In this document: one piece after another, positions 6,641 through 64,000 of the stretch | How the letters are laid out: each line of letters starts with the position of its first letter | How positions within the stretch are numbered: position 1 is the first letter of the stretch | Assembly: GCF_001194135.2 (NCBI RefSeq) | Contig: NC_068990.1 | Span: 70,545,550 to 70,609,549 of the forward strand | Direction: 5' to 3' | DNA length: 64,000 nucleotides | From: Octopus bimaculoides | Lineage: Eukaryota | Translations under genes and position numbers: made by a program | The notes under the pieces: generated by a model | Seen by the model: the letters and a program-made list of their open reading frames with translations, nothing else | What the model was told of the DNA's origin: nothing | Database searches by the model: none

Positions 6641-7103
6641 TATTCAAATCTACCAAGACATATTAAGAATAAATATACACATCATCATTTTGATTTTCAT
6701 GTTCATACACATAGCAATTTTTTATGTATCAAACTATACTTCTATAGAATCGGTTGTTTTTACTTCCAGTTCTTCAGCCTCATCTCCCCAACAAACAAGA
6801 TTCATCACACACATACAGGCATACATGAAAGTAATATGGCAGGAAATTGGCATTTTTGCAGAGATATAATCCTATACCATGTCATCTACTAAAGAAACCT
6901 TACAGTGTATAGAATTTAGCACGCTAGACAAAATACTTAGCAGCATTTCACCATTTTCAAATTCTACTAAGGTCAACTTTGCTTTCCTCTTTTTGGAGTC
7001 AATAACGTAAGTACCAGTTACACACTGGGGTTGGTGTAATCAACTAGACCCCCCCCCCCAAATTTCTGGCCTTGTGCTTTTACTACAAAGGAATATTATT
7101 TTT

Positions 7104-7557
7104 AGCTATATTAAATCTTTGAGCGAGATATGAACAATAGCAGTATGGAATTGTAACATATAATTGCCAACCAAGTGTGGCGTCCTATACAGGACAGTGC
7201 TACTGATGTTTATAGCCCCAGAAAGACATCTCTTCCAGCTGGCTAACAACACCCATTCTGTGTCCGATTAGTGTTTGTGAGGGGAGGTCATCGCTCCCAT
7301 CTCTAGCCTTATATGATACGCACGGACTTGAGTTTCTGGGTGGTTACCCTTCCTCAGCATGTGCTAATCACAAGCTAGTGATGAAAACTCATTCCACTCG
7401 CAAAATTCTCTATGCTTTTTCCAGTGACAAGCTGTTGCTGAACTCGAAAAAGGAGAAATAAGCTATATTAAATCTCTGAGTGAGATATAAACAGTAGCAG
7501 TACAGAATCGTAACATATAATTACCGACCAAGTGTGGCATCCTATACAGGACAGTGC

Positions 7558-7559
<2 letters not shown>
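7104..7559 (-). mobile_element. Retrozyme-like or Penelope pseudo-LTR non-autonomous element (357-nt unit, about 1.3 copies)
   Basis: 99-bp direct repeats at 7104-7202 and 7461-7559 (10 mismatches, all transitions), no meaningful ORF, internal hammerhead, flanked by ATT repeats. Confidence 0.65.
7303..7378 (-). ncRNA. Type I hammerhead ribozyme motif with minimal stem III
   Basis: - strand reads ctagcttgtgattagcacatg-CUGAGGA-a-GGGU-aacc-ACCC-a-GAAA-c-ucaa-GUC-cgtgcgtatcatataaggctag. Core boxes are in the correct order, stem II is 4 bp, the cleavage triplet is GUC, and stem I is extended and closed by ctagc/gctag. Confidence 0.8.
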
Positions 7560-7624
<65 letters not shown>

Positions 7625-8916
7625 ATAAGCCAGCAAGCTGGCAAAAGCATTAGCATGTTGGACAAAACTGTTTCACAGTATTTTTCTTGCTCTTTATGGT
7701 CTGAGTTCAGATTCTGCTGAGGTCAACTTTGCCTTTCATCTTTTCAGGGTAGATAAAATAAGTACCAGTTGAACACTAGAGTTGATGAAATTGACTAGCC
7801 CCCTCCCCATAAATTTCAAACCTTGTGCCTGTAGTAGGAAGGATCTCATTTTAAAAAGTAGTTTTACTTTATTTCATTGTCATCATAAACAAGAAAAACA
7901 TCTCATGCTTTTCACATCATTACTATTCGGTAATGTTCTTTATATCTATTTTGGTACCACTCTGCAGTGAGGTAGCAAGAGTTCTCGGTGTCAGGGGGAG
8001 GAGGGAGAGCAGGAGGGTAAATACACTTCTGGTTCTTCCCCTCCTTCTCCTTAATTAACAGGCACCCCTTCAAACCTGCATGTGAGGTGACATGCCTGCC
8101 CCATTTCTCCCCTCTCTTGCTATCCTTCTGGTCAGGGTCAATTTATTTTTAGTCCCACTAACTGTGTATAGCTTTAGCGTTTCAATGTAAAGCCATTGTT
8201 GTTTTGTGAACTAAAATAAGCAACACCAGTGTGAGTGTGGAGATTAGTTTTAAACAAATTACAACTCACAAACATGTCTGCCTTGGGCTTCTGAAATCTA
8301 ATCACTTGACCTCAGATCCAGGGAACACCTAACCTGTCTAACTTTCAGATGAATATTACTTTAAAACTCCTAAGTGTATTATACTTTTAGCTCTTTTGTT
8401 ACCATATTTCACCTGAAATAGACTGATTGCGTTTCAATTAATTTAAAAAATAATGAAGACTTTAGTGTATAACTTTTGTTATTATTAAGCTGATGTTTCA
8501 AACATAAATTAACATGAAATTATGATGGCAGGTTTTAACTTAGGTCTCTTTAAAACCGGAAGTTTGTATCATGGAGCCAGAGTTGTTCTCATTTTGATTA
8601 TTATGAAAAGGATTAGAGTCAGCTGTCCTCGAGCAGTGGTTTTATTTTTCTCTTCTTTTTAACCTTTTTACAGTTACAATTTAGTAACATATTAGAATTA
8701 GTTATTAAATTACTACTATGCTGTAGGCTCTTTTTATCTCCTGTAAACTGAGTAATTTCCTGAAAATTGAGAATATCATTTTACCTTTTATATACTAAGT
8801 CCAGCTGAATTACATAATTTAACCTTAGCCTTGAGGTTGTATTATAAGCCTTTTACATTTGGTTTTACTAACACTTTGTCTCCTTTAACAGTTTTAAATT
8901 TAATGCCCTTTTATAG

Positions 8917-8948
<32 letters not shown>

Positions 8949-9451
8949 NNNNNNNNNNNNNNNNNNNNNNNNNNNNNNNNNNNNNNNNNNNNNNNNNNNN
9001 NNNNNNNNNNNNNNNNNNNNNNNNNNNNNNNNNNNNNNNNNNNNNNNNNNNNNNNNNNNNNNNNNNNNNNNNNNNNNNNNNNNNNNNNNNNNNNNNNNNN
9101 NNNNNNNNNNNNNNNNNNNNNNNNNNNNNNNNNNNNNNNNNNNNNNNNNNNNNNNNNNNNNNNNNNNNNNNNNNNNNNNNNNNNNNNNNNNNNNNNNNNN
9201 NNNNNNNNNNNNNNNNNNNNNNNNNNNNNNNNNNNNNNNNNNNNNNNNNNNNNNNNNNNNNNNNNNNNNNNNNNNNNNNNNNNNNNNNNNNNNNNNNNNN
9301 NNNNNNNNNNNNNNNNNNNNNNNNNNNNNNNNNNNNNNNNNNNNNNNNNNNNNNNNNNNNNNNNNNNNNNNNNNNNNNNNNNNNNNNNNNNNNNNNNNNN
9401 NNNNNNNNNNNNNNNNNNNNNNNNNNNNNNNNNNNNNNNNNNNNNNNNNNN
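8949..9451. other. Assembly gap (503 N)
   Basis: N run; other gaps at 13081-13167, 33141-33195, 42998-43633 and 47504-47513. Confidence 1.
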
Positions 9452-12980: not shown

Positions 12981-13247
12981 CTAGAAGATTACTAAAGAAA
13001 AGGAAGTGTTAGTGGTGGTGGTCATAATAGTCAGTGGGGGGAGAGTGATGGTGATGGTAGTGATAGTGGTGACAAAGACTNNNNNNNNNNNNNNNNNNNN
13101 NNNNNNNNNNNNNNNNNNNNNNNNNNNNNNNNNNNNNNNNNNNNNNNNNNNNNNNNNNNNNNNNNNNTAGTGTAGTTGTAGTGATAATGATAAAGTTGGT
13201 GAACATTATGATAACAGTAATTCAGCTCTATTCCATTTTAATTCTTC

Positions 13248-19884: not shown

Positions 19885-22800
19885 TTCAAGCGGAGGACGC
19901 TTGAAAGGAGACATGTCAATGTATGCTGCATACAAGAGGTAAGATGGAGAGGAGCTTCAGCTAGGATCCTCACAGGCAAGGTACCTAGGTATAAAATCTT
20001 CTGGTAAGGTAACATGGATGGAGTAGGGGGTGTAGGCATCATCCTTGCGGAGAAATGGGTAGATAAAATCATAGAGGTTGTCAGGGTATGCGATAGAGTG
20101 CTTAAGCTCAGGCTAGTCCTGCAGAACAGCACAGCTACAATTATCTCTGCCTGCGCCCGACAAGCGGGCCTACCAAATGATCAGACAGACCATTTTTATG
20201 ATACCCTTCTACAGGCTACCTCAAAGATGAGTGGCAATGACCTCATCTTTGCGACTGGAGATTTTAATGGGCATGTTGGGCGGCAATCCAGTATCTTTAC
20301 TGGTGTACATGGGGACCATGGTATTGGTTCTTGAAACAATGAGAGAACTAGGCTACTGGAGTTCTGTGATGCATGTAACCTTTCAATCTGCTACACTAAC
20401 TTCAGGAAGCCAGACAGCCACCTGATAACCTATCAATCAGGTGACTCTGCTAGCCAGATTGATTTCATCTTCACCAGACAGTGAAACGCAGGGCTGCTCT
20501 TAAATACAAAGACCCTCCCAGGTGAAGAATGTACCCCCTAGCATAGACTACTCGTTAGTGACTTTAGGCTCAAGGCCAGAAGGATGCCAAGAAGCAGACC
20601 AATACAGAAAAGAAAGATTTGGAAGCTAAAGCACCCTTCACATGGTCAGAGATTTAGGGACATCCTCATCAAGAAATTTGATGAAAGGGAGGAGGAGCTA
20701 CAGACCTCGGACATGGAAGGTAGCTGGAAATTCCTACAAGACAGCTTATTGAGTGCCACAGACTGAGTCTGCGGATGGTGCAAAGTTCCCTCCAGACCTA
20801 GAGTAATGTGGTGGTGGAATAATACGGTAGACAAGGCCATTAGAGCAAAGAAACAGGCCTGGAAAGCCTGGAAGGGTAGGGGTAGCAGGGAACTGTACCA
20901 GATAGCCAGAAAGGAGGCTGAGCAACAGGTATACATAGCCAAGGGCGAAGCAGAAAAGAAGTTTGCCAATGTCCAGCGACATGAGAACCAAATAACTGAA
21001 GTATTTCAGATTTGAAGACAGTGTGTGAGAGAAAATTGTGATGTCACAGGAGAGAAATGTGTCTGCATGGATGATGGTGCACTTGCTTTTAATGATTTGG
21101 AAAAGAAAGAGGCCTGGAGAAGTCATTATGAAAGACCACTGAATGTGGAGAATGATTGGGAGGAAGACAGCCTGCCAAATGTTGACCCAGTAGAGGGACC
21201 AGCTATCCGAATAGACAGCACCCTGATAGATAAAGCAATTAAGGGTATGAAGTTAGGAGAATCCCCCAGCCCATCAGGCATCATTGATGAGATGCTTCAA
21301 ACTTCTGGTGATGTGGGTTATGGCCTAGTCACCTGCATTGTAAACCAGGTAGTTCGTGATGGAGTCATACCCAATGACTGGCATAGCAACACTATAGTCA
21401 ACTGCTACAGGGGTAAAGGTGATGCTTTAGATAGAAATAACTACAGGGTTATCAAACTGCTAGATCAGGTGATGAAGGTCATGGAGAGGGTCATAGCCCA
21501 ACTAATTAGGAAGAGAGTCTGCTTAGATGAGATGCAGTTCAGTTTTGTGCCAGGTAGAAGCACCACTGATGCTATATTCCTGGTACGGCAACTGCAGAAG
21601 AAATACCTAGCCAAAGATAAACCCATATACTTGGCTGTTGTTCACTTGGAGAAAGCCTTTGACATGGTCCCCCAATCCCTTATCTGGTGGGCAATGTGGA
21701 AACTGGGGACTGACAAATGGTTAATAAGGACTGTACAGGCCCTATAGAGATGCCGTTAGTAAGGTTAGGGTTGGCAATGAGTATAGTGAAGAATTCCAGT
21801 TAGAAGTAGGGTTACACCAAAGATCAGCCCTCAGTCCCCTTCTATTCATCATAGCCCTCCAGGCAATAACAGAGGAATTGAAGACAGGTTGCTCCTGGGA
21901 GCTCCTCTATGCTGATGACCTTGCTCTCATAGCAGAATCACTACCAGAACTAGAGAAGAAATTTCAGGTGTGGAAGCAAGGTTTAGAATCGAAATGCCTT
22001 AGAGTCAATGTTGCAAAGACCAAAGTTGTAGTAAGTAGGAAGGCAAACTCATCACACACCCCTTCAGGTAGGTGGCCCTGCTCAATCTGTAGAAAAGGTG
22101 TAGGTAGAAACTCCATAAGATGTACTCAGTGTAATCTATGGACATATAAGAGGTGCAGCAAAGGAAGATTAACCGGGAAGATAGCTTTCATGTGCGGCAG
22201 ATGCACAGGGGAAATAAACACCACAGATGCTCAGGAAACAGATTCCATCACTTGCCAGGGGGAGAAACTAGAAGTAGTTTATAGCTTCCCTAGGTGACCA
22301 AGTCTGTCGTGTGAGTGGATACTCAGAGAGTGTTACCACTAGAATGAGAATAGCCTGGGCAAAGTTCAGAAAGCTTCTACCCCTACTGGGGACAAAGGGC
22401 CTCTTGCTCAAAGTGAAAAGTAGATTCTACAATGCATATGTGTGAACTGCCATGCTTCACAGCAGTGAAACATGGGCCGTGACTGCTGAAAACATGTGTA
22501 GGCTTCAAAGAAATGAAGCTAGCATGATCCGCTGGATGTGTAATGTCAGTGTGCACACACGACAGAGTGTAAGCACCCTGAGAGAAATGTTGGACATAAG
22601 AAGTATCAGATGCGGCGTGCAAGAGAGACATTTGCATTAGTACAGTCATATACTACAGATGGGTGAGGAGAGCTGTGTGAAGAAGTGCCTCTCCCAAACA
22701 GTTGCAGGAATCCAGAGTGGAGGGTGACCCAGGAAGACATAGAATGAGGTGGTGAAGCATGACCTTTGAACATTGGGCCTCACAGAGGCAATGATGAAAG

Positions 22801-23313: not shown

Positions 23314-24880
23314 CAGTATCTCATAGAAGTACATCCCTAAAACATTTCAGTAAAATTGCTTTTACTCTGATAATATCGAAAGAAACCAAAGAAAATTTAT
23401 ACTGAATAAAATATATTATACATGCAAACATTATATAAACTTGGAACACAAAGCAATAACCATTTTCAAAGATATGAACGAAATATTAATTTTCAAATAT
23501 TACAGAAATATGTATACCCTAAAGGAAATTTGCTATATTCAATATTTTATCTCCTTATTTTTAGTATATTCAGATATTGCTGATAATTTCAATTCTAATA
23601 AATTATTTCTCCTGGCATTTTTGTACTGGTCATTGTTATTGCATCTGCAGGAATTCTGATTTGTGTACCGTGGTGAAAATCTTCTTCATAATGATTAAAA
23701 TGACACCAAAAGGAAAAGAATTGTCTGCAGATTTGAAGAAAATTATTTTTAATTTGCACAGGAATGGTTTAGGATACAAGTTAATTTGCAAACGAATACA
23801 TATTAGTCTAAATACTGTTGCCGAAGTATTTCAGAAGTACAAAGCTACTGGCCGGCTAAGCAATAAACATCATCCAGGTTGTCCTTCTATTTTAACTGCA
23901 CATAATATTCACTCCATCCAACATAGCATGATGGACAACAGGCATCGTACCACTTCATCTTTGGCCCAAGATGTGTCTTCTGTTAGTGGAAAGAGTATAT
24001 CTGCCCAAACAGTTCACCAAAGTTTAAACCAGTGTGGTCTTCATGGCCACATTTCTCGTAAGAAGCCTCTCTTTACTACCAGGTATAAATCATGTTGTCT
24101 TTCTTTTGCTGAAACCTATGTGAGTAAAGGGAAGGAGTTTTGGAATACAAATTTTTTTTCTGATGAGACTAAAATCAACTTGTTTGGGTCAGATGGTATT
24201 AAATGAGTATGGCGATGACCAGGTGAAGATAATAGCAACACATGCACTGTACCTGCCATGAAACATGGCAGTGGAAGTGCTTTGGGGATGCACAAGTGCA
24301 GTTGGTGTGGGAGGACTCACGTATATTGAGAGAACAATGGATTCAAGGCTTTATTGTAGCATATTGCAGAAAACAGCATTGAAAAGTATCAAGGAACTAG
24401 GAAGACATTCCATGTTCTAACATGATAATGACCCTAAACACATTTCAAAGATGACAACTAAGTTTTTATCAGATCAAAAGGTAAAGGTGTTGCCTTGGCC
24501 TACCATGTCACCTGATTTAAACCCAATAGAATATCTGTGGGATGTTTTGAAAAAGAAAGTTGAAAAGAAAGACCCCATAATGTAACACAGTTGAAAGACA
24601 TCATTCAGGATGAATGGAGGTCGATTTCATTGGTTATATGTGGAAATTTAGTTGACTCTATGCCCAGAAGACTTAATGTAGTCATTGAAAGCAAGAGCAG
24701 TCACACCAAATATTGAATATAGCAAATAATCATTTAGGGTGTACATATTTTTGTAGAGTTTGAAAATTAATATTTCGTTCATATCTTTAAAAATGTTTAT
24801 TGTTTTGTGTTCCAAGTCAGTATAAATTTCATTTGATTACCTTCGATATCATCAGAGTAATGGCAATTTTACTGACATTT
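23314..24880 (+). mobile_element. Tc1-family transposon with long inverted repeats; transposase pseudogene 23700-24716
   Basis: TA|CAGT start; MTPKGKELS...RKKPL...FSDETKINLFGSDG...HDNDPKH...SPDLNPIE; ~230-bp left TIR mirrored at 24708-24875 with a deletion and a missing tip. Confidence 0.93.
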
Positions 24881-32711: not shown

Positions 32712-33370
32712 GTACAATGAAGATGATGATTATGATGTTGTAGGTTCTGTGTGTGTGTGTTTGTATTCTTTGGATATTTATTATAAAGAATAGGCTCTAC
32801 AAAGGAAGAATTTCAAGAACATAGCCTGATGGTTGTCAGTTCAATTCCCAGTGGCTTGTTATGTCCTTCATCTAGACGCTTTGCTAGACACAATGCTCCA
32901 GTCAACTCAGCTGGTAATTCAAAAGGCCAGCCTTGTCACATTCTGTGTCATGCTGAATCTCCCTGAGAACTACTTTAAGGGTACACGTCTGTGGAATGCT
33001 TGGCCACTTGCACATTAATTTTACGAGCATACTGTTCTGTTGATCAGGTAACTAGAATCCTCATCATCGTAATTGACAGAGTGCCAGTATTATACCAGCC
33101 AAAATCTGATCCATGCATGTACTTATATATATATATATATNNNNNNNNNNNNNNNNNNNNNNNNNNNNNNNNNNNNNNNNNNNNNNNNNNNNNNNTATAT
33201 ATAGGCATTGATGGTTCTGTGGTTAAGAAGTTTGCTTTGCAACAATGTGGTTTTGGGTTTATTCCTACTGCACAACCCTTGTGCTAGTATTGTCTAATAT
33301 AGTATTGGTCCAACCAATACCTTGTTGGTGAAATTTTAAAATTTTAGAAATGGAAACTGTATGGTCGCCT

Positions 33371-42997: not shown

Positions 42998-43893
42998 NNN
43001 NNNNNNNNNNNNNNNNNNNNNNNNNNNNNNNNNNNNNNNNNNNNNNNNNNNNNNNNNNNNNNNNNNNNNNNNNNNNNNNNNNNNNNNNNNNNNNNNNNNN
43101 NNNNNNNNNNNNNNNNNNNNNNNNNNNNNNNNNNNNNNNNNNNNNNNNNNNNNNNNNNNNNNNNNNNNNNNNNNNNNNNNNNNNNNNNNNNNNNNNNNNN
43201 NNNNNNNNNNNNNNNNNNNNNNNNNNNNNNNNNNNNNNNNNNNNNNNNNNNNNNNNNNNNNNNNNNNNNNNNNNNNNNNNNNNNNNNNNNNNNNNNNNNN
43301 NNNNNNNNNNNNNNNNNNNNNNNNNNNNNNNNNNNNNNNNNNNNNNNNNNNNNNNNNNNNNNNNNNNNNNNNNNNNNNNNNNNNNNNNNNNNNNNNNNNN
43401 NNNNNNNNNNNNNNNNNNNNNNNNNNNNNNNNNNNNNNNNNNNNNNNNNNNNNNNNNNNNNNNNNNNNNNNNNNNNNNNNNNNNNNNNNNNNNNNNNNNN
43501 NNNNNNNNNNNNNNNNNNNNNNNNNNNNNNNNNNNNNNNNNNNNNNNNNNNNNNNNNNNNNNNNNNNNNNNNNNNNNNNNNNNNNNNNNNNNNNNNNNNN
43601 NNNNNNNNNNNNNNNNNNNNNNNNNNNNNNNNNTTAACACCCTACCTAACCCATGAAAATCATGCGGGTGTTAATCTGAAAATTTAACAATCTTTTTTAA
43701 AACACTTTTGCTTACTAACATTTTTTTATTTAGTGTGTGTGTGTGTTGCCCATATATATATATACACTTAAGACTTAGTTGTGGGTTGGGACTTTCATCG
43801 GCACAGGTCATTATTATTACGACCATATATATACATACACACAGAATGCACGTTAATACACACATACATACAAATACCTATCATTTTTTTTTA

Positions 43894-45593: not shown

Positions 45594-48500
45594 CATATAT
45601 CACATGTACCCCATATATAATGCAATACTTAATGGCGGTATTATTTCATTTTCTTCTTTTCCCTCCAAGGCCCCTTTTACCATTCATTGTGCATTTCTTG
45701 CTCTGCAATCATTTTACCAGATGAAAGGAAGACTTCCCAACACCAGGTAAGTAGGGAATTTTATAGCTTTGTGATTGATGTTGTTGTTGCCATGACACAA
45801 TTAGAAGTGCTTCATCTAACCCCCACCCTGTATGGCAGGGGTTGTCAAAGCAATACTGCAGACTTAGAGAAACACAGCCTCAAGCAGAATATATGCAAAC
45901 ATTAACACCTGACAAAACATTACAAATCCTCAAAATATAGCCTAGATATTCAAAACCCATTAATATTACATATATTTATATTCTATTTTTTGCAAATCTA
46001 CAGTCCCACCAAGTGACACAGTTTTCACTACACTTTCTAAATTTACTCTCTGATATCACTGCAGAGGGTTATTTTTTTAATGTATGCAATATATACATAA
46101 TGGAAAATTTCATATATAAATCTATCTATATTTATATAAAGATGAGAATGTGTGTCTGTCTGTTTGTCTGTCTGTGTGAATCCTTAAAACTTGAGAACTA
46201 CACAACCAATTTCATTCAAATTTTACACTTGCCTTACTTTGGGTCCATGTAGTGTTTTAGGCCCCTCCAAATTTTTTTAACTTTATGCCTAGTGCGAGCC
46301 CAGTCCAATATCACATCCCCTCCACTATTTCAGTATTACGTGTCAAAAGTGAAACAATAACATCTCTCTATTGTAATGTCAGATATTTTCACTTTAATAG
46401 TTTCACTTTAATACTGAAACTATTAAAGTGAAACTATTATCTCACATATATACAGGCATACATGCATATATACATACTTAAATATATTTATTACTAGTAG
46501 AGATACCCGGCGTTGCCCGTGTTACATGCAATAGAAGAATTAGACTTTTCTGTTATATTTTCTCTAATGAACTGGAATACCTATGATTCGAATTTCATCA
46601 AAATTGCAGATGAGGGTTCTTTCCCTCTTTACACACCATAAAAAATTCTAATCATGACACGTATCCCATACTACTGATCTTTATGTGCAGATTCCAAAAT
46701 TCCAGTCTTATGGAACCTGTTAAAAGGATTTTGCTCCTGAGAAATGGAGGTCATGGAGCTCTAAAATGTGGGAGTTAAGGACCCTGTTGGGGGTGGGTGT
46801 CTTAATGTCAACCAGAGAAGTTGAGAATTTTTTTGACTTGGGTGTTATATGTATTGTTTGAATTTCTTTGAAATAGGAAATATATGTATGTTCACTGGGT
46901 TTGTAAAAGAGAGCAAAGCTACAGGAAACCAAAAGACGAATGATCACAATAAGCAGTCAGCTACCCTAGCCTAGTCGTTACTACTCCCCAATGTAGAATT
47001 CCTCACAATACAGGTGACAGGCACATGTATATTTATAGATGTATATATATATATATAGATATAGATGTATATGTATACATGTATATGTGTAGATGTATAT
47101 ATTTAGATGTACATGCATATATATAGATGTACATGTCATATGTACACATATATATATACACATATATACATGCATACATATATACACTCATACACACACA
47201 CACATACACACACATACACACACACACACACACATACATAGGTGCAGGTGTGACTGTGTGGTAAAAAACTTGGTTCCAAAACACATGGTCCTGGGTTCAG
47301 TCCCTCTATGTGGTGACTTGGCATGTGTCTTCTGCTATAGCCTCACACCAACCAAAGCATTGTGAGTGGATTTTGTAGACAGAAACTGAAAGAAATCAAT
47401 CGTATATATATGTACGTATATATGTAAGTGTATGTGTGTGTCTTTGTCTCTGTGTTTCTCCCTCATCACTGCTTCACAACTGCTGTTCGTTTATTTACAT
47501 CCCNNNNNNNNNNATATATATATATATATATATATATATAATACACACACACACATACATGTATGTATATGTGTATATTCATATCTATTATATAAAAGTC
47601 AATGTCTTTATGTGTGTTCGTGTGTTACTTATACATTCGAAAACTACTGCACTGATCCTAATGAAATTTAGAACACAAAATCCAAGCCTAGGGAGAAGGG
47701 TAATGCTGTGTGTTTCATACAATTTCATGGACCAAAATTACTGAATGGATGCTTATGATATTTGGAACTTAGATTCAATGCGTAAGGGCAAGTATAATGC
47801 AGTATGTTTGGTTTGAATTTGAGATAGCTTAAAGGGGGCAGAACCCCCATGAAAATTCATAAATTTTCAATGTTGATGAAATTTCAATACATCAAGACGT
47901 ATTTTCAAACTTTCCACTTCTCATGAGTCTAAAACCATCTCTGGAACATAAACAATGGTGGTGGGGTCAAACACAAACACATACATAAATATATACATAT
48001 ATATATATGTATAACAGGCTTCTTTCAGTTTCTGTCTACCAAATCCACTCACAAGGCTTTTGTCAACCTGAGGCTGTAGTAGAAGACACTTGCTCAAGGT
48101 GCCATGTAGGGAGACTGAAACCGGAACCATGTACTTGGGAAGCAAGCTTCTTACTATACAGCCATGCTTTTATATATATATATATATATGGTGATGGCAA
48201 TAATAATGCGACCCTGAAGAGATGGAGTATCCGGCAGTTTATAATTTGTAATTTGTAATGTGTTATAATATGTTATAATATTTTATGAGACATTTTATGA
48301 TGTGGTTTATTTATCCTGGATACTCTATTGAAATGTGCGTAGGTTTGGCTTATTGTTGTTGTTTCTGCTATTATAATTGTTGCTGCAATAAAGTATCTTC
48401 AATGCATCGATTTTGAGCTCTATTTTTTAAGNNNNNNNNNNNNNNNNNNNNNNNNNNNNNNNNNNNNNNNNNNNNNNNNNNNNNNNNNNNNNNNNNNNNN

Positions 48501-49324
48501 NNNNNNNNNNNNNNNNNNNNNNNNNNNNNNNNNNNNNNNNNNNNNNNNNNNNNNNNNNNNNNNNNNNNNNNNNNNNNNNNNNNNNNNNNNNNNNNNNNNN
48601 NNNNNNNNNNNNNNNNNNNNNNNNNNNNNNNNNNNNNNNNNNNNNNNNNNNNNNNNNNNNNNNNNNNNNNNNNNNNNNNNNNNNNNNNNNNNNNNNNNNN
48701 NNNNNNNNNNNNNNNNNNNNNNNNNNNNNNNNNNNNNNNNNNNNNNNNNNNNNNNNNNNNNNNNNNNNNNNNNNNNNNNNNNNNNNNNNNNNNNNNNNNN
48801 NNNNNNNNNNNNNNNNNNNNNNNNNNNNNNNNNNNNNNNNNNNNNNNNNNNNNNNNNNNNNNNNNNNNNNNNNNNNNNNNNNNNNNNNNNNNNNNNNNNN
48901 NNNNNNNNNNNNNNNNNNNNNNNNNNNNNNNNNNNNNNNNNNNNNNNNNNNNNNNNNNNNNNNNNNNNNNNNNNNNNNNNNNNNNNNNNNNNNNNNNNNN
49001 NNNNNNNNNNNNNNNNNNNNNNNNNNNNNNNNNNNNNNNNNNNNNNNNNNNNNNNNNNNNNNNNNNNNNNNNNNNNNNNNNNNNNNNNNNNNNNNNNNNN
49101 NNNNNNNNNNNNNNNNNNNNNNNNNNNNNNNNNNNNNNNNNNNNNNNNNNNNNNNNNNNNNNNNNNNNNNNNNNNNNNNNNNNNNNNNNNNNNNNNNNNN
49201 NNNNNNNNNNNNNNNNNNNNNNNNNNNNNNNNNNNNNNNNNNNNNNNNNNNNNNNNNNNNNNNNNNNNNNNNNNNNNNNNNNNATATATATAAAATCATA
49301 TATATATATATATATATATATAAA

Positions 49325-62996: not shown

Positions 62997-64000
62997 CAGT
63001 GATACCTCACAGTACGAGTTTAATTCATTCCATGACCGAGCTCGTTTTAGAATTTACTCATTTTACAAATCAATTTTTTCCATTGAAATTAACTAAAATA
63101 TAATTAATCCATTCCAACCCACCAAAGCCACCCCAAAATAAACAAATGGTGTAGCTACAAGTAAAATGATAATTATGAAAAATTATAAAAAAGAGAATGC
63201 ATAAGAAATATGTAAACTGGTTTTATTAACTGAATTACCTTAAAGATGGGACAATTAGTGTGTAAGGAAGACGATAGAGCAAAGAGGAGGAGGATTACTG
63301 TTTGGAAGGTGAATCTCCTTCCATTAAGACTTCATGAAGAATAATTTCTGATGTTTTCTCTCTCACTTAATTTCGGCTTTTTAGACACACTTTCTTCACT
63401 TTTTACACTTGCAGGTCGTTTCATTAGAAACATATCAAGAGAAGTCTGCTTTTTCCTGCCTTTCAAAATGTTACATAAATGCGCCAGAGCAGTGTCATTA
63501 AATAAAGCAGCTGCACAACCTGTAGCTACTTTTTCAGGATGATATTTTTCTACAAATTCAGAAACATATTGCCGCTTTACCAACACAACTTTTATGTCAC
63601 TCATAGAGATAGCATTCTCCATTACACTGTCCTCTGCTACATTGCCAGGCCATATCAATGATTTTTCAGGTGGTTTACAATGTTGTAGTGCTCCTTTCAA
63701 AAACTCACAAAGGGTTAGATTTGTAATTTCAATGACTTCAAAGCACCGAAGAAACAGGTGTTTGGTGTACAAGTTCTTAAAATTAGAAATTATCTGTTGG
63801 TCCATGGGCTGCAAGATAGTGGTGGTGTTGCATGAAAGGTACATAACTTTTATAAATTTAAATTCATCCTAGATATCATCTTCAAGGTTAGGAGGGTGAG
63901 CAGGAACATAGTTGAGGTTGAAGATTGTTCTCCACTAGATACTTTCTCACTGTTGGTCTGAAGACAAGGTTGACCCACTTGGAGAAGAATTGCCTGGTGA
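62997..64000 (-). mobile_element. pogo/Tigger-family transposon, decayed; runs off the window
   Basis: TA|CAGTGATACCTC terminus; NTTTILQPMDQQIISNFKNLY DDE-domain motif (ORF 63332-63844). Confidence 0.88.

Follow-up and report, generated by a model that had tools for sequence, protein, structure and literature searches.

What is the non-coding stretch at positions 7104-7559, between imperfect direct repeats, in this region of Octopus bimaculoides contig NC_068990.1, and is it still able to do what its sequence suggests? All positions refer to the window, by which we mean the whole 64,000-nucleotide (nt) stretch of DNA that was analysed. A preliminary description of the window had proposed that the stretch is a retrozyme-like element built around a hammerhead ribozyme. 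Retrozymes, the derivatives of Penelope-like elements (PLEs) that bear hammerheads, have been described in corals, mussels, insects, fish, amphibians and reptiles, and the octopus family joins this established kind. The earlier author knew of no described cephalopod example, and our literature search likewise returned no paper on a cephalopod hammerhead or retrozyme. On the evidence set out below, the locus is probably a non-coding retroelement with a hammerhead, inserted long ago and now inactive, belonging to a non-autonomous family that is mobilised in trans by PLEs and resembles the retrozymes without long terminal repeats (LTRs). With its single degraded ribozyme, this particular copy is most likely inert.

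The ribozyme motif at the centre of this reading comprises the following parts.

7312-7372, minus strand: type I hammerhead of the minimal Penelope type, with helix I of 7 base pairs (bp), a 2-nt bulge and 5 bp, helix II of 4 bp, and helix III of 2 bp with a 4-nt loop
7371-7358 and 7324-7313, minus strand: 5' strand and 3' strand of helix I
7351-7357, minus strand: core box CUGAGGA (C3 to A9; N7 is G)
7337-7350, minus strand: helix II, GGGU-AACC-ACCC, including one extra nt on each side (GGGU 7349-7346, ACCC 7341-7338, loop AACC)
7333-7336, minus strand: core box GAAA (G12 to A15.1)
7333-7326, minus strand: helix III, ACUCAAGU, with A-U and C-G pairs and a UCAA loop
7324-7325, minus strand: predicted cleavage site GUC, with the cut after C17 (7325) and before C1.1 (7324)

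On the minus strand the letters of the motif run GUGAU-UA-GCACAUG / CUGAGGA / A-GGGU-AACC-ACCC-A / GAAA / CUCAAGU / C | CGUGCGU-AUCAU. The core has the form CUGANGA...GAAA with an H17 after U16.1. Three helices surround it; helix I is open, and a loop closes each of the other two. Six of the seven inner positions of helix I are paired, the remaining one being a C.A mismatch. A structural descriptor was drawn up that requires both core boxes, no fewer than 4 bp in helix II, the A15.1-U16.1 pair plus one further pair, H17, and at least six of the seven helix I pairs. It matched the window once, at this site, and produced no match in 300 first-order Markov simulations of the window; for the 26-nt pattern of core plus helix II, the expected count was 0.00. 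The complete type I hammerhead that had been claimed for the minus strand between the repeats was thus recovered, at 7372-7312, as the only descriptor match in the window. These features support the prediction, made from sequence, that the motif is a genuine type I hammerhead of the Penelope or retrozyme kind. A type III fold, in which an upstream UGAGU would pair with ACUCA after the GAAA box, was also considered and rejected; its helix I is a poor hairpin with a 9-nt bulge.

The same motif belongs to a large family. When public sequencing runs of four related organisms (A-D) were mapped to the region, as contigs and as reads, word depth within the element reached 17,000-95,000, compared with 42-64 in the single-copy flanks (run X1). 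The copy number estimate is approximately 300-2,000, varying by segment; raw DNA reads gave a depth of up to ~1,200 from 1.9 Gb read, which agrees in order of magnitude. The majority letters were identical in organisms A-D. The copy-number check recommended in the preliminary description therefore returned a family of ~300-2,000 copies, and the ribozyme of its majority sequence is better than that of the copy in the window.

Eight differences separate this copy from the majority over the ribozyme region. At four of them (7359, 7320, 7364 and 7313) the majority letter turns a wobble or mismatch of helix I into a Watson-Crick pair. The majority letter at 7329 makes helix III ACUCGAGU, a perfect 8-nt palindrome as to positions 15.2-16.2 and loop 3, which this copy (ACUCAAGU) has lost through a single change. 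The difference at 7350 is the nucleotide after A9, and the seventh and eighth differences (7312 and 7372) cost the majority sequence a pair at the outer end of helix I. Folded as a monomeric hammerhead, the majority sequence is predicted at -15.7 kcal/mol versus -10.7 kcal/mol for this copy. For a domain-swapped dimer with an 8-bp intermolecular helix III, the corresponding values are -47.9 and -31.2 kcal/mol, the former lying near the unconstrained dimer minimum of -50.3 kcal/mol. Read-throughs into diverged subfamilies contain other palindromic or near-palindromic versions of helix III, ACCUAGGU and ACCUGGGU; cores reading CUGAUGA occur in them too, as does a changed helix II, GAGU...AUUC, whose strands remain able to pair.

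Variation within the family is distributed around the core as follows. With variants listed down to 7% over 7330-7353, none at or above that level was found in the GAAA box or in most of the 3' strand of helix II. In the CUGAGGA box alternatives occur only at N7 (7353, up to ~20%) and G8 (4-9%), and no core position has an alternative letter that reaches 25%. N7 is the most variable position of the core, as would be expected, and the other core positions are the least variable. This pattern, the alternative palindromes and the helix II variant may be read as signs of selection on the fold. So may the minor letters at 7358 (22-32%) and 7324 (34-42%), which would change the first pair of helix I from G-C to A-U.

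The arrangement of the element around this ribozyme was then compared with that of other copies. Its parts and immediate flanks are as follows.

7461-7559, minus strand: repeat R2, an upstream partial unit on the sense reading, equal to the last 99 nt of the unit; a pseudo-LTR-like 5' redundancy
7203-7460, minus strand: unique part U (258 nt), non-coding, with the hammerhead inside; belongs to the 357-nt unit
7104-7202, minus strand: repeat R1, closing the full unit at its 3' end in the sense reading
7104-7150 (47 nt), minus strand: 'tail' of R1, absent from the terminus of most other copies
7560-7625, no strand: (ATT)22 microsatellite, directly next to the element on its 5' side in the sense reading; probable target site
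7093-7103, no strand: left flank AATATTATTTT, read directly from the sequence; remnant of the same ATT tract

The 99-bp direct repeats 357 nt apart, previously described as making about 1.3 tandem units, are present: R1 and R2 are 90% identical and start 357 nt from each other. The sense strand is the minus strand, on which the full 357-nt unit consists of U (7460 to 7203) and then R (7202 to 7104). Ahead of it stand the last 99 nt of another unit (R, 7559 to 7461), giving 1.28 units and one ribozyme in total, and the insertion as a whole sits within an (ATT)n tract. R2 is nearer to the family majority sequence than R1 is. The 10% divergence between R1 and R2 is the only indication of the age of the insertion. 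A blastn comparison of the element with the 64-kb window gave no second copy.

The element was confirmed to be without an evident coding sequence, as had been claimed, the longest start-to-stop open reading frame (ORF) overlapping it being 48 amino acids. Its plus strand holds an 81-codon stop-free frame that lacks a start codon, whose sole relative among 5.8 billion proteins was one spurious ORF on a 1.1-kb Logan contig. A search of the protein collection with the same frame of the majority sequence returned one contig, too few for covariation statistics. A non-coding unit of 357 nt with a GC content of 41.7-42.9% and a type I hammerhead falls within the ~170-400 nt and low GC content of the non-LTR retrozymes.

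The ends of the copies are informative about how they were inserted. Several contigs end exactly at 7104/7105, the left boundary of this copy, and a commoner ending in other copies is at ~7150-7159, beside differing (TA)n or AT-rich flanks. The constant end of the copies is the 3' end on the minus strand, in keeping with a ribozyme that is read from that strand. The segment 7104-7150 is common at internal junctions and mostly absent at termini, in which it resembles the 'tail' drawn for PLE insertions (PMC8557442). The order R-U-R recurs elsewhere, including the 7460/7461 junction from the end of U into R, for example in pieces spanning 7147-7531 in X14 and X15 and at 266-616 of L001, the one full family contig available. 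In L001 a copy of R (72 nt), U and R (20 nt) is met head-to-head by an inverted, 5'-truncated copy and adjoins (GT)n. Joints of the 'opposite strands' and 'goes back' types are frequent among the family contigs, and the flanks of the family are (ATT)n, (TA)n, (GT)n or AT-rich.

The published signature of PLE integration combines partial tandems with inverted, 5'-truncated partners and with microsatellite targets, toward which PLE insertion is biased (PMC8557442), and all three occur in this family. At the present locus the flanks ATTATTTTT and (TTA)n would allow ATTATT as a target-site duplication, an ambiguous one given that the target is itself a microsatellite. The same insertion was looked for in organisms B-D at an identity of at least 96%, and the junction at 7060-7101 was covered in organism A only, a result that does not settle orthology. 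A tandem with at least two ribozymes is absent here, and the order U-R-U occurs in a few family contigs. The family looks mostly dispersed, in partial-tandem and inverted insertions of the Penelope style and not in long arrays. By the usage of bioRxiv 10.64898/2026.07.22.740005, the copy in the window is a monomer derivative.

This architecture suggests another account, in which the element is the internally deleted remnant of one autonomous Penelope (a pseudo-LTR, a piece of the interior and a pseudo-LTR) and no separately amplifying family exists. R-U-R is the PLE layout minus the ORF, PLE hammerheads sit in pseudo-LTRs (PMC4209133), and the retrozymes and pseudo-LTRs of frogs are sequence relatives (bioRxiv 10.64898/2026.07.22.740005). 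However, the hammerhead lies in U and not in the repeated R, and neither this copy nor L001 has sequence for a reverse transcriptase (RT) or GIY-YIG domain beside it. The same U and the same R/U junctions are moreover shared by hundreds of copies in four organisms, which indicates that the short form itself was amplified. We consider a lone deletion remnant unlikely.

According to the preliminary description, attachment of all copies to a coding Penelope element would make this an ordinary pseudo-LTR remnant; no RT/GIY-YIG ORF is attached to the present copy, and the element does not contain the autonomous PLE ORF (telomerase-like RT plus GIY-YIG). The RT ORF nearest to it, at 6339-5710 on the minus strand and ~800 nt off, continues in other frames to ~4860 and has the motifs FVPGRST and YADD and a Cys-rich C-terminal segment. 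It was rejected as a Penelope partner, having motifs of the long interspersed nuclear element (LINE) type and no GIY-YIG; the family boundaries also exclude it.

We infer self-cleavage, a PLE partner and the nature of the template. For the partner we go by how the copies are inserted and by published accounts of numerous, recently active Penelope families in Octopus (PMC13282606, which gives 30 recently active ones; PMC8967140). The extra 99 nt are better read as a PLE-style partial tandem, left when a template of more than one unit was reverse-transcribed. Such a template RNA, a multimeric transcript or a circle, would have been copied at a nicked AT-rich microsatellite, primed where R is rich in A and U toward its 3' end. 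The cDNA would then have covered 1.28 units and been truncated at its 5' end. The palindromic helix III of the source copies would let their hammerhead cut multimeric RNA as a dimer. Of the octopus retrozyme family proposed earlier, we therefore retain a non-coding, hammerhead-bearing, high-copy family of the retrozyme or PLE kind, probably mobilised in trans, and set aside the 357-nt circle.

A number of observations weigh against this interpretation, and the first group of these concerns the junction between helix II and the core. The nucleotide after A9 (7350) is A in this copy, whereas 69% of family depth has C and 25% has U; the nucleotide before G12 (7337) is A, with no variant listed in the family. 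Strictly read, positions 10.1-11.1 are thus A.A in this copy, and in the family C.A (69%) or U-A (25%). A strict hammerhead rule-set rejects a mispair adjoining the core (PMC3088659), and with C or A opposite A beside helix II, ~75% of family depth fails that rule. If one extra nucleotide is instead allowed on either side of helix II, the G10.1-C11.1 pair is present. PLE hammerheads typically leave one nucleotide unpaired after A9 (PMC4209133), while for the extra A between C11.1 and G12 no description was found in the literature consulted. The minor letters at 7358 and 7324 mentioned above are known as frequencies per position and not per copy. No autonomous PLE that has R or U in common with the family was found, in searches made without a genome of this organism. 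Depth across the family also drops on both sides of 7218-7249, for which 5' truncation, mosaic subfamilies or both would fit; this uneven depth does not fit long, even tandem arrays.

The hammerhead scan suggested in the preliminary description gave a divided answer. Our own descriptor was positive, with its one match, and the Rfam covariance models were not: cmscan with Rfam 15 reported no hammerhead at the gathering score in the whole window or at E<=10 in 6900-7900. This too counts against a hammerhead, with small weight, and a comparison was available from elsewhere. An exact core-pattern scan of metagenome contigs returned seven loci, none of this family, one of which (L006) is an independent hammerhead. 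It lies at 569-635 on the plus strand of contig NODE-19508 of the ENA metagenome ERZ1740055 and has every part of a type I hammerhead in the design seen here, reading ACUCU / CUGAUGA / C-GGGU-GAAA-ACCC-A / GAAA / CUCGAGU / A | AGAGU. Its helix I differs from that of the octopus family, and a tRNA gene is present at 15-87 of the contig. Used as a control, L006 was likewise missed by Rfam at E<=10; the Rfam negative therefore says little about the subclass with a short helix III. L006 also has the C...A arrangement beside helix II, which is not independent evidence for it, as the pattern used in the scan demanded the A and left the opposite position free.

Taken at their strongest, the missing Rfam match and the non-canonical junction of helix II with the core would mean that the motif is incidental and functionless, and that the element is an ordinary repeat, either SINE-like (resembling short interspersed nuclear elements) or dependent on a LINE, or else a locally duplicated minisatellite. 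The LINE RT ORF ~800 nt away on the same strand would suit such a repeat, and the hammerheads of PLEs, for which dimeric action has been proposed, cleave poorly in vitro (PMC4209133). Against this stand the absence of descriptor matches in the 300 simulations, the majority letters that mend helix I and create the palindrome, and the separate palindromes retained by separate subfamilies. L006 has the same design with another helix I. The family boundaries at 7104 and 7559 leave out both the LINE and the neighbouring SINEs, and the recurrence of R-U-R elsewhere means that local slippage is not its source. We regard an incidental motif as very unlikely.

The remaining points against a hammerhead retroelement come from RNA, for which three deep paired RNA-seq runs of organism A were used (~12 million reads sampled from each, library selection unstated). 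Reads of the family numbered 70-178 per run, in both orientations. At a depth of 20-45, the three runs showed no pile-up of ends at 7324/7325, and they contained no back-joint reads and no circles. Depth of RNA contigs over the element was ~60-260, versus ~220,000 for the neighbouring SINE. This very locus was found in RNA contigs of another run at a depth of ~3, which fits read-through transcription or DNA carry-over.

These data bear most directly on the possibility that the locus, or the family, is an active retrozyme, its tandem transcripts being cut to 357-nt monomers and ligated to circles that serve as the template for transposition. Published non-LTR retrozymes act in this way (PMC7229834). 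The insertion is longer than one unit, so its template held more than one unit, and at least one other copy has the end of U, R and the start of U on a single contig, where 94 nt flank the joint 7494->7160 on either side. A palindromic helix III suits cleavage of multimers as dimers. Nevertheless, the locus has a single, degraded ribozyme, and the few RNA reads lack both ends at the cleavage site and back-joints, at contig depths far below those of the SINE. Raw DNA reads also contained no recurrent 357-nt back-joints, and their depth was uneven over the unit. An active retrozyme is accordingly improbable in our judgement.

The ~357-nt circular RNA predicted for this locus in the preliminary description was not borne out: with one ribozyme in 1.28 units, a transcript would be cut once at most and would release no monomer, and neither back-joints nor ends at the cleavage site were seen in the three runs. 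There is only a slender chance that a cephalopod retrozyme of this family is still active, with a conserved extra N-opposite-A layer separating the A9/G12 core from the G10.1-C11.1 pair, dimer cutting and ~357-nt circles in a tissue or stage outside those sampled.

Each of the three RNA-seq runs also held 6-12 reads that change strand at 7274/7277, from a family copy elsewhere, and the loose-end sequence there agrees fully where listed (run X30). This suggests either one transcribed copy with a head-to-head inverted repeat or snap-back of reverse transcriptase at a hairpin.

Among known systems, the non-autonomous insertion that we favour is closest in its unit to the non-LTR retrozymes of metazoans (Acropora, Mytilus and Ambystoma; Cervera & de la Peña 2020, PMC7229834; vertebrate survey, bioRxiv 10.64898/2026.07.22.740005). 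It shares with them a short unit without coding sequence, a type I hammerhead, a GC content below 45%, high copy number, co-occurrence with PLEs and common monomeric 'offspring' copies; the unit measures 357 nt here, and published families in insects and a coral average ~300-340 nt. Unlike them, the locus has 1.28 units and one ribozyme, neither circles nor abundant expression were seen, and the family looks mainly dispersed.

In the details of its ribozyme, the family approaches the minimal hammerheads in the pseudo-LTRs of PLEs (Cervera & de la Peña 2014, PMC4209133). An unpaired nucleotide after A9, a short palindromic helix III that implies dimer action, and high sequence variability within the genome are common to both, as would be the G10.1-C11.1 pair if helix II is read with one extra nucleotide on each side. 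Shared too is the insertion architecture of partial tandems, inverted 5'-truncated copies and microsatellite targets (PMC8557442). In contrast to the PLE hammerheads, the element lacks an RT/GIY-YIG ORF, carries its ribozyme in the unique and not the repeated part, and has the additional A between C11.1 and G12. PLE hammerheads have a helix II of 7-8 bp and a helix I of 4-5 bp, whereas helix II here is 4 bp and helix I is 7+5 bp. A long helix I with a 4-bp helix II is like the 'canonical' type I motifs of metazoans.

The SM-alpha/W-element repeats of Schistosoma and the satellite 2 of salamanders are non-coding repeats of ~330 nt with a type I hammerhead and a weak helix III. They occur largely in tandem, satellite-like arrays, and their transcripts and self-cleavage have been demonstrated. 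The octopus element is like them in size, in being non-coding and in its type I hammerhead with a weak helix III, which in our case is known from its sequence. The LTR retrozymes of plants (PMC4918200) are also non-autonomous and ribozyme-bearing, with direct terminal repeats. However, they have type III hammerheads in true LTRs, a primer binding site and polypurine tract, 4-bp target-site duplications and a dependence on Ty3/Gypsy elements, none of which is seen here.

The hammerhead design with the extra layer beside helix II goes unreported by the Rfam hammerhead models and is found in at least one unrelated environmental sequence (L006). The extra nucleotides and the Rfam misses suggest that covariance-model scans under-count this subclass of hammerheads. 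The octopus family would add to the known cases a lineage unusually rich in SINEs, LINEs and Penelope elements, and would give annotators a name for a repeat that has probably been filed as 'unknown' or 'unclassified SINE'.

The surroundings of the element contain further repeats. The RT ORF described above belongs to a degraded LINE at ~6630-4700 on the minus strand, which has several frameshifts, an RT domain (RVT_1) and a Cys-rich C-terminal segment, CSICRKGVGRNSIRCTQCKLWVHKRC. Against the protein collection, its RT matched mostly ENA proteins at ~50-57%, the best named match being an uncharacterised protein of Octopus sinensis with 59% identity. A fragment 75% identical to the LINE of the window is labelled Escherichia coli in NCBI, and contamination of that record is the probable explanation.

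Two diverged copies of a tRNA-like SINE flank the element on the plus strand, at 6900-7092 and 7626-7843. They are 75-79% identical and have motifs resembling the A-box and B-box, e.g., GAGTTCAGATTC. In its most conserved 36 nt this SINE reached 11.4 million in word depth where single-copy sequence has 42, which puts it on the order of 10^5 copies. A C10 homopolymer lies at 7050-7059 in the first copy, where the second reads CCCCCTCCCC. The first copy terminates in ATTATT, and the hammerhead element may have landed in its ATT tail.

Elsewhere in the window, transposon ORF fragments lie at 21025-21747 (plus strand), 23577-24206 (plus strand) and 63332-63844 (minus strand), their types being another RVT_1 reverse transcriptase, the helix-turn-helix region of a Tc1/Sleeping Beauty-type transposase and a weak DDE_1 match. 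Assembly gaps, seen as runs of N (2,143 N in total), occupy 8949-9451, 13081-13167, 33141-33195, 42998-43633, 47504-47513 and 48432-49283, and several of the long 'ORFs' listed by the program merely cross them.

Two further loci, both on JACCDO01 contigs, share another arrangement (L004 at ~2135-2160 and L005 at ~7593-7618, minus strand). In each, CUGAUGA-A-GGGUAUUCACCC-A-GAAAC stands between GACUAGU and ACUAGUC, which could pair as helix III and leave almost no space for helix I. They may represent a split or permuted hammerhead-like repeat in another organism.

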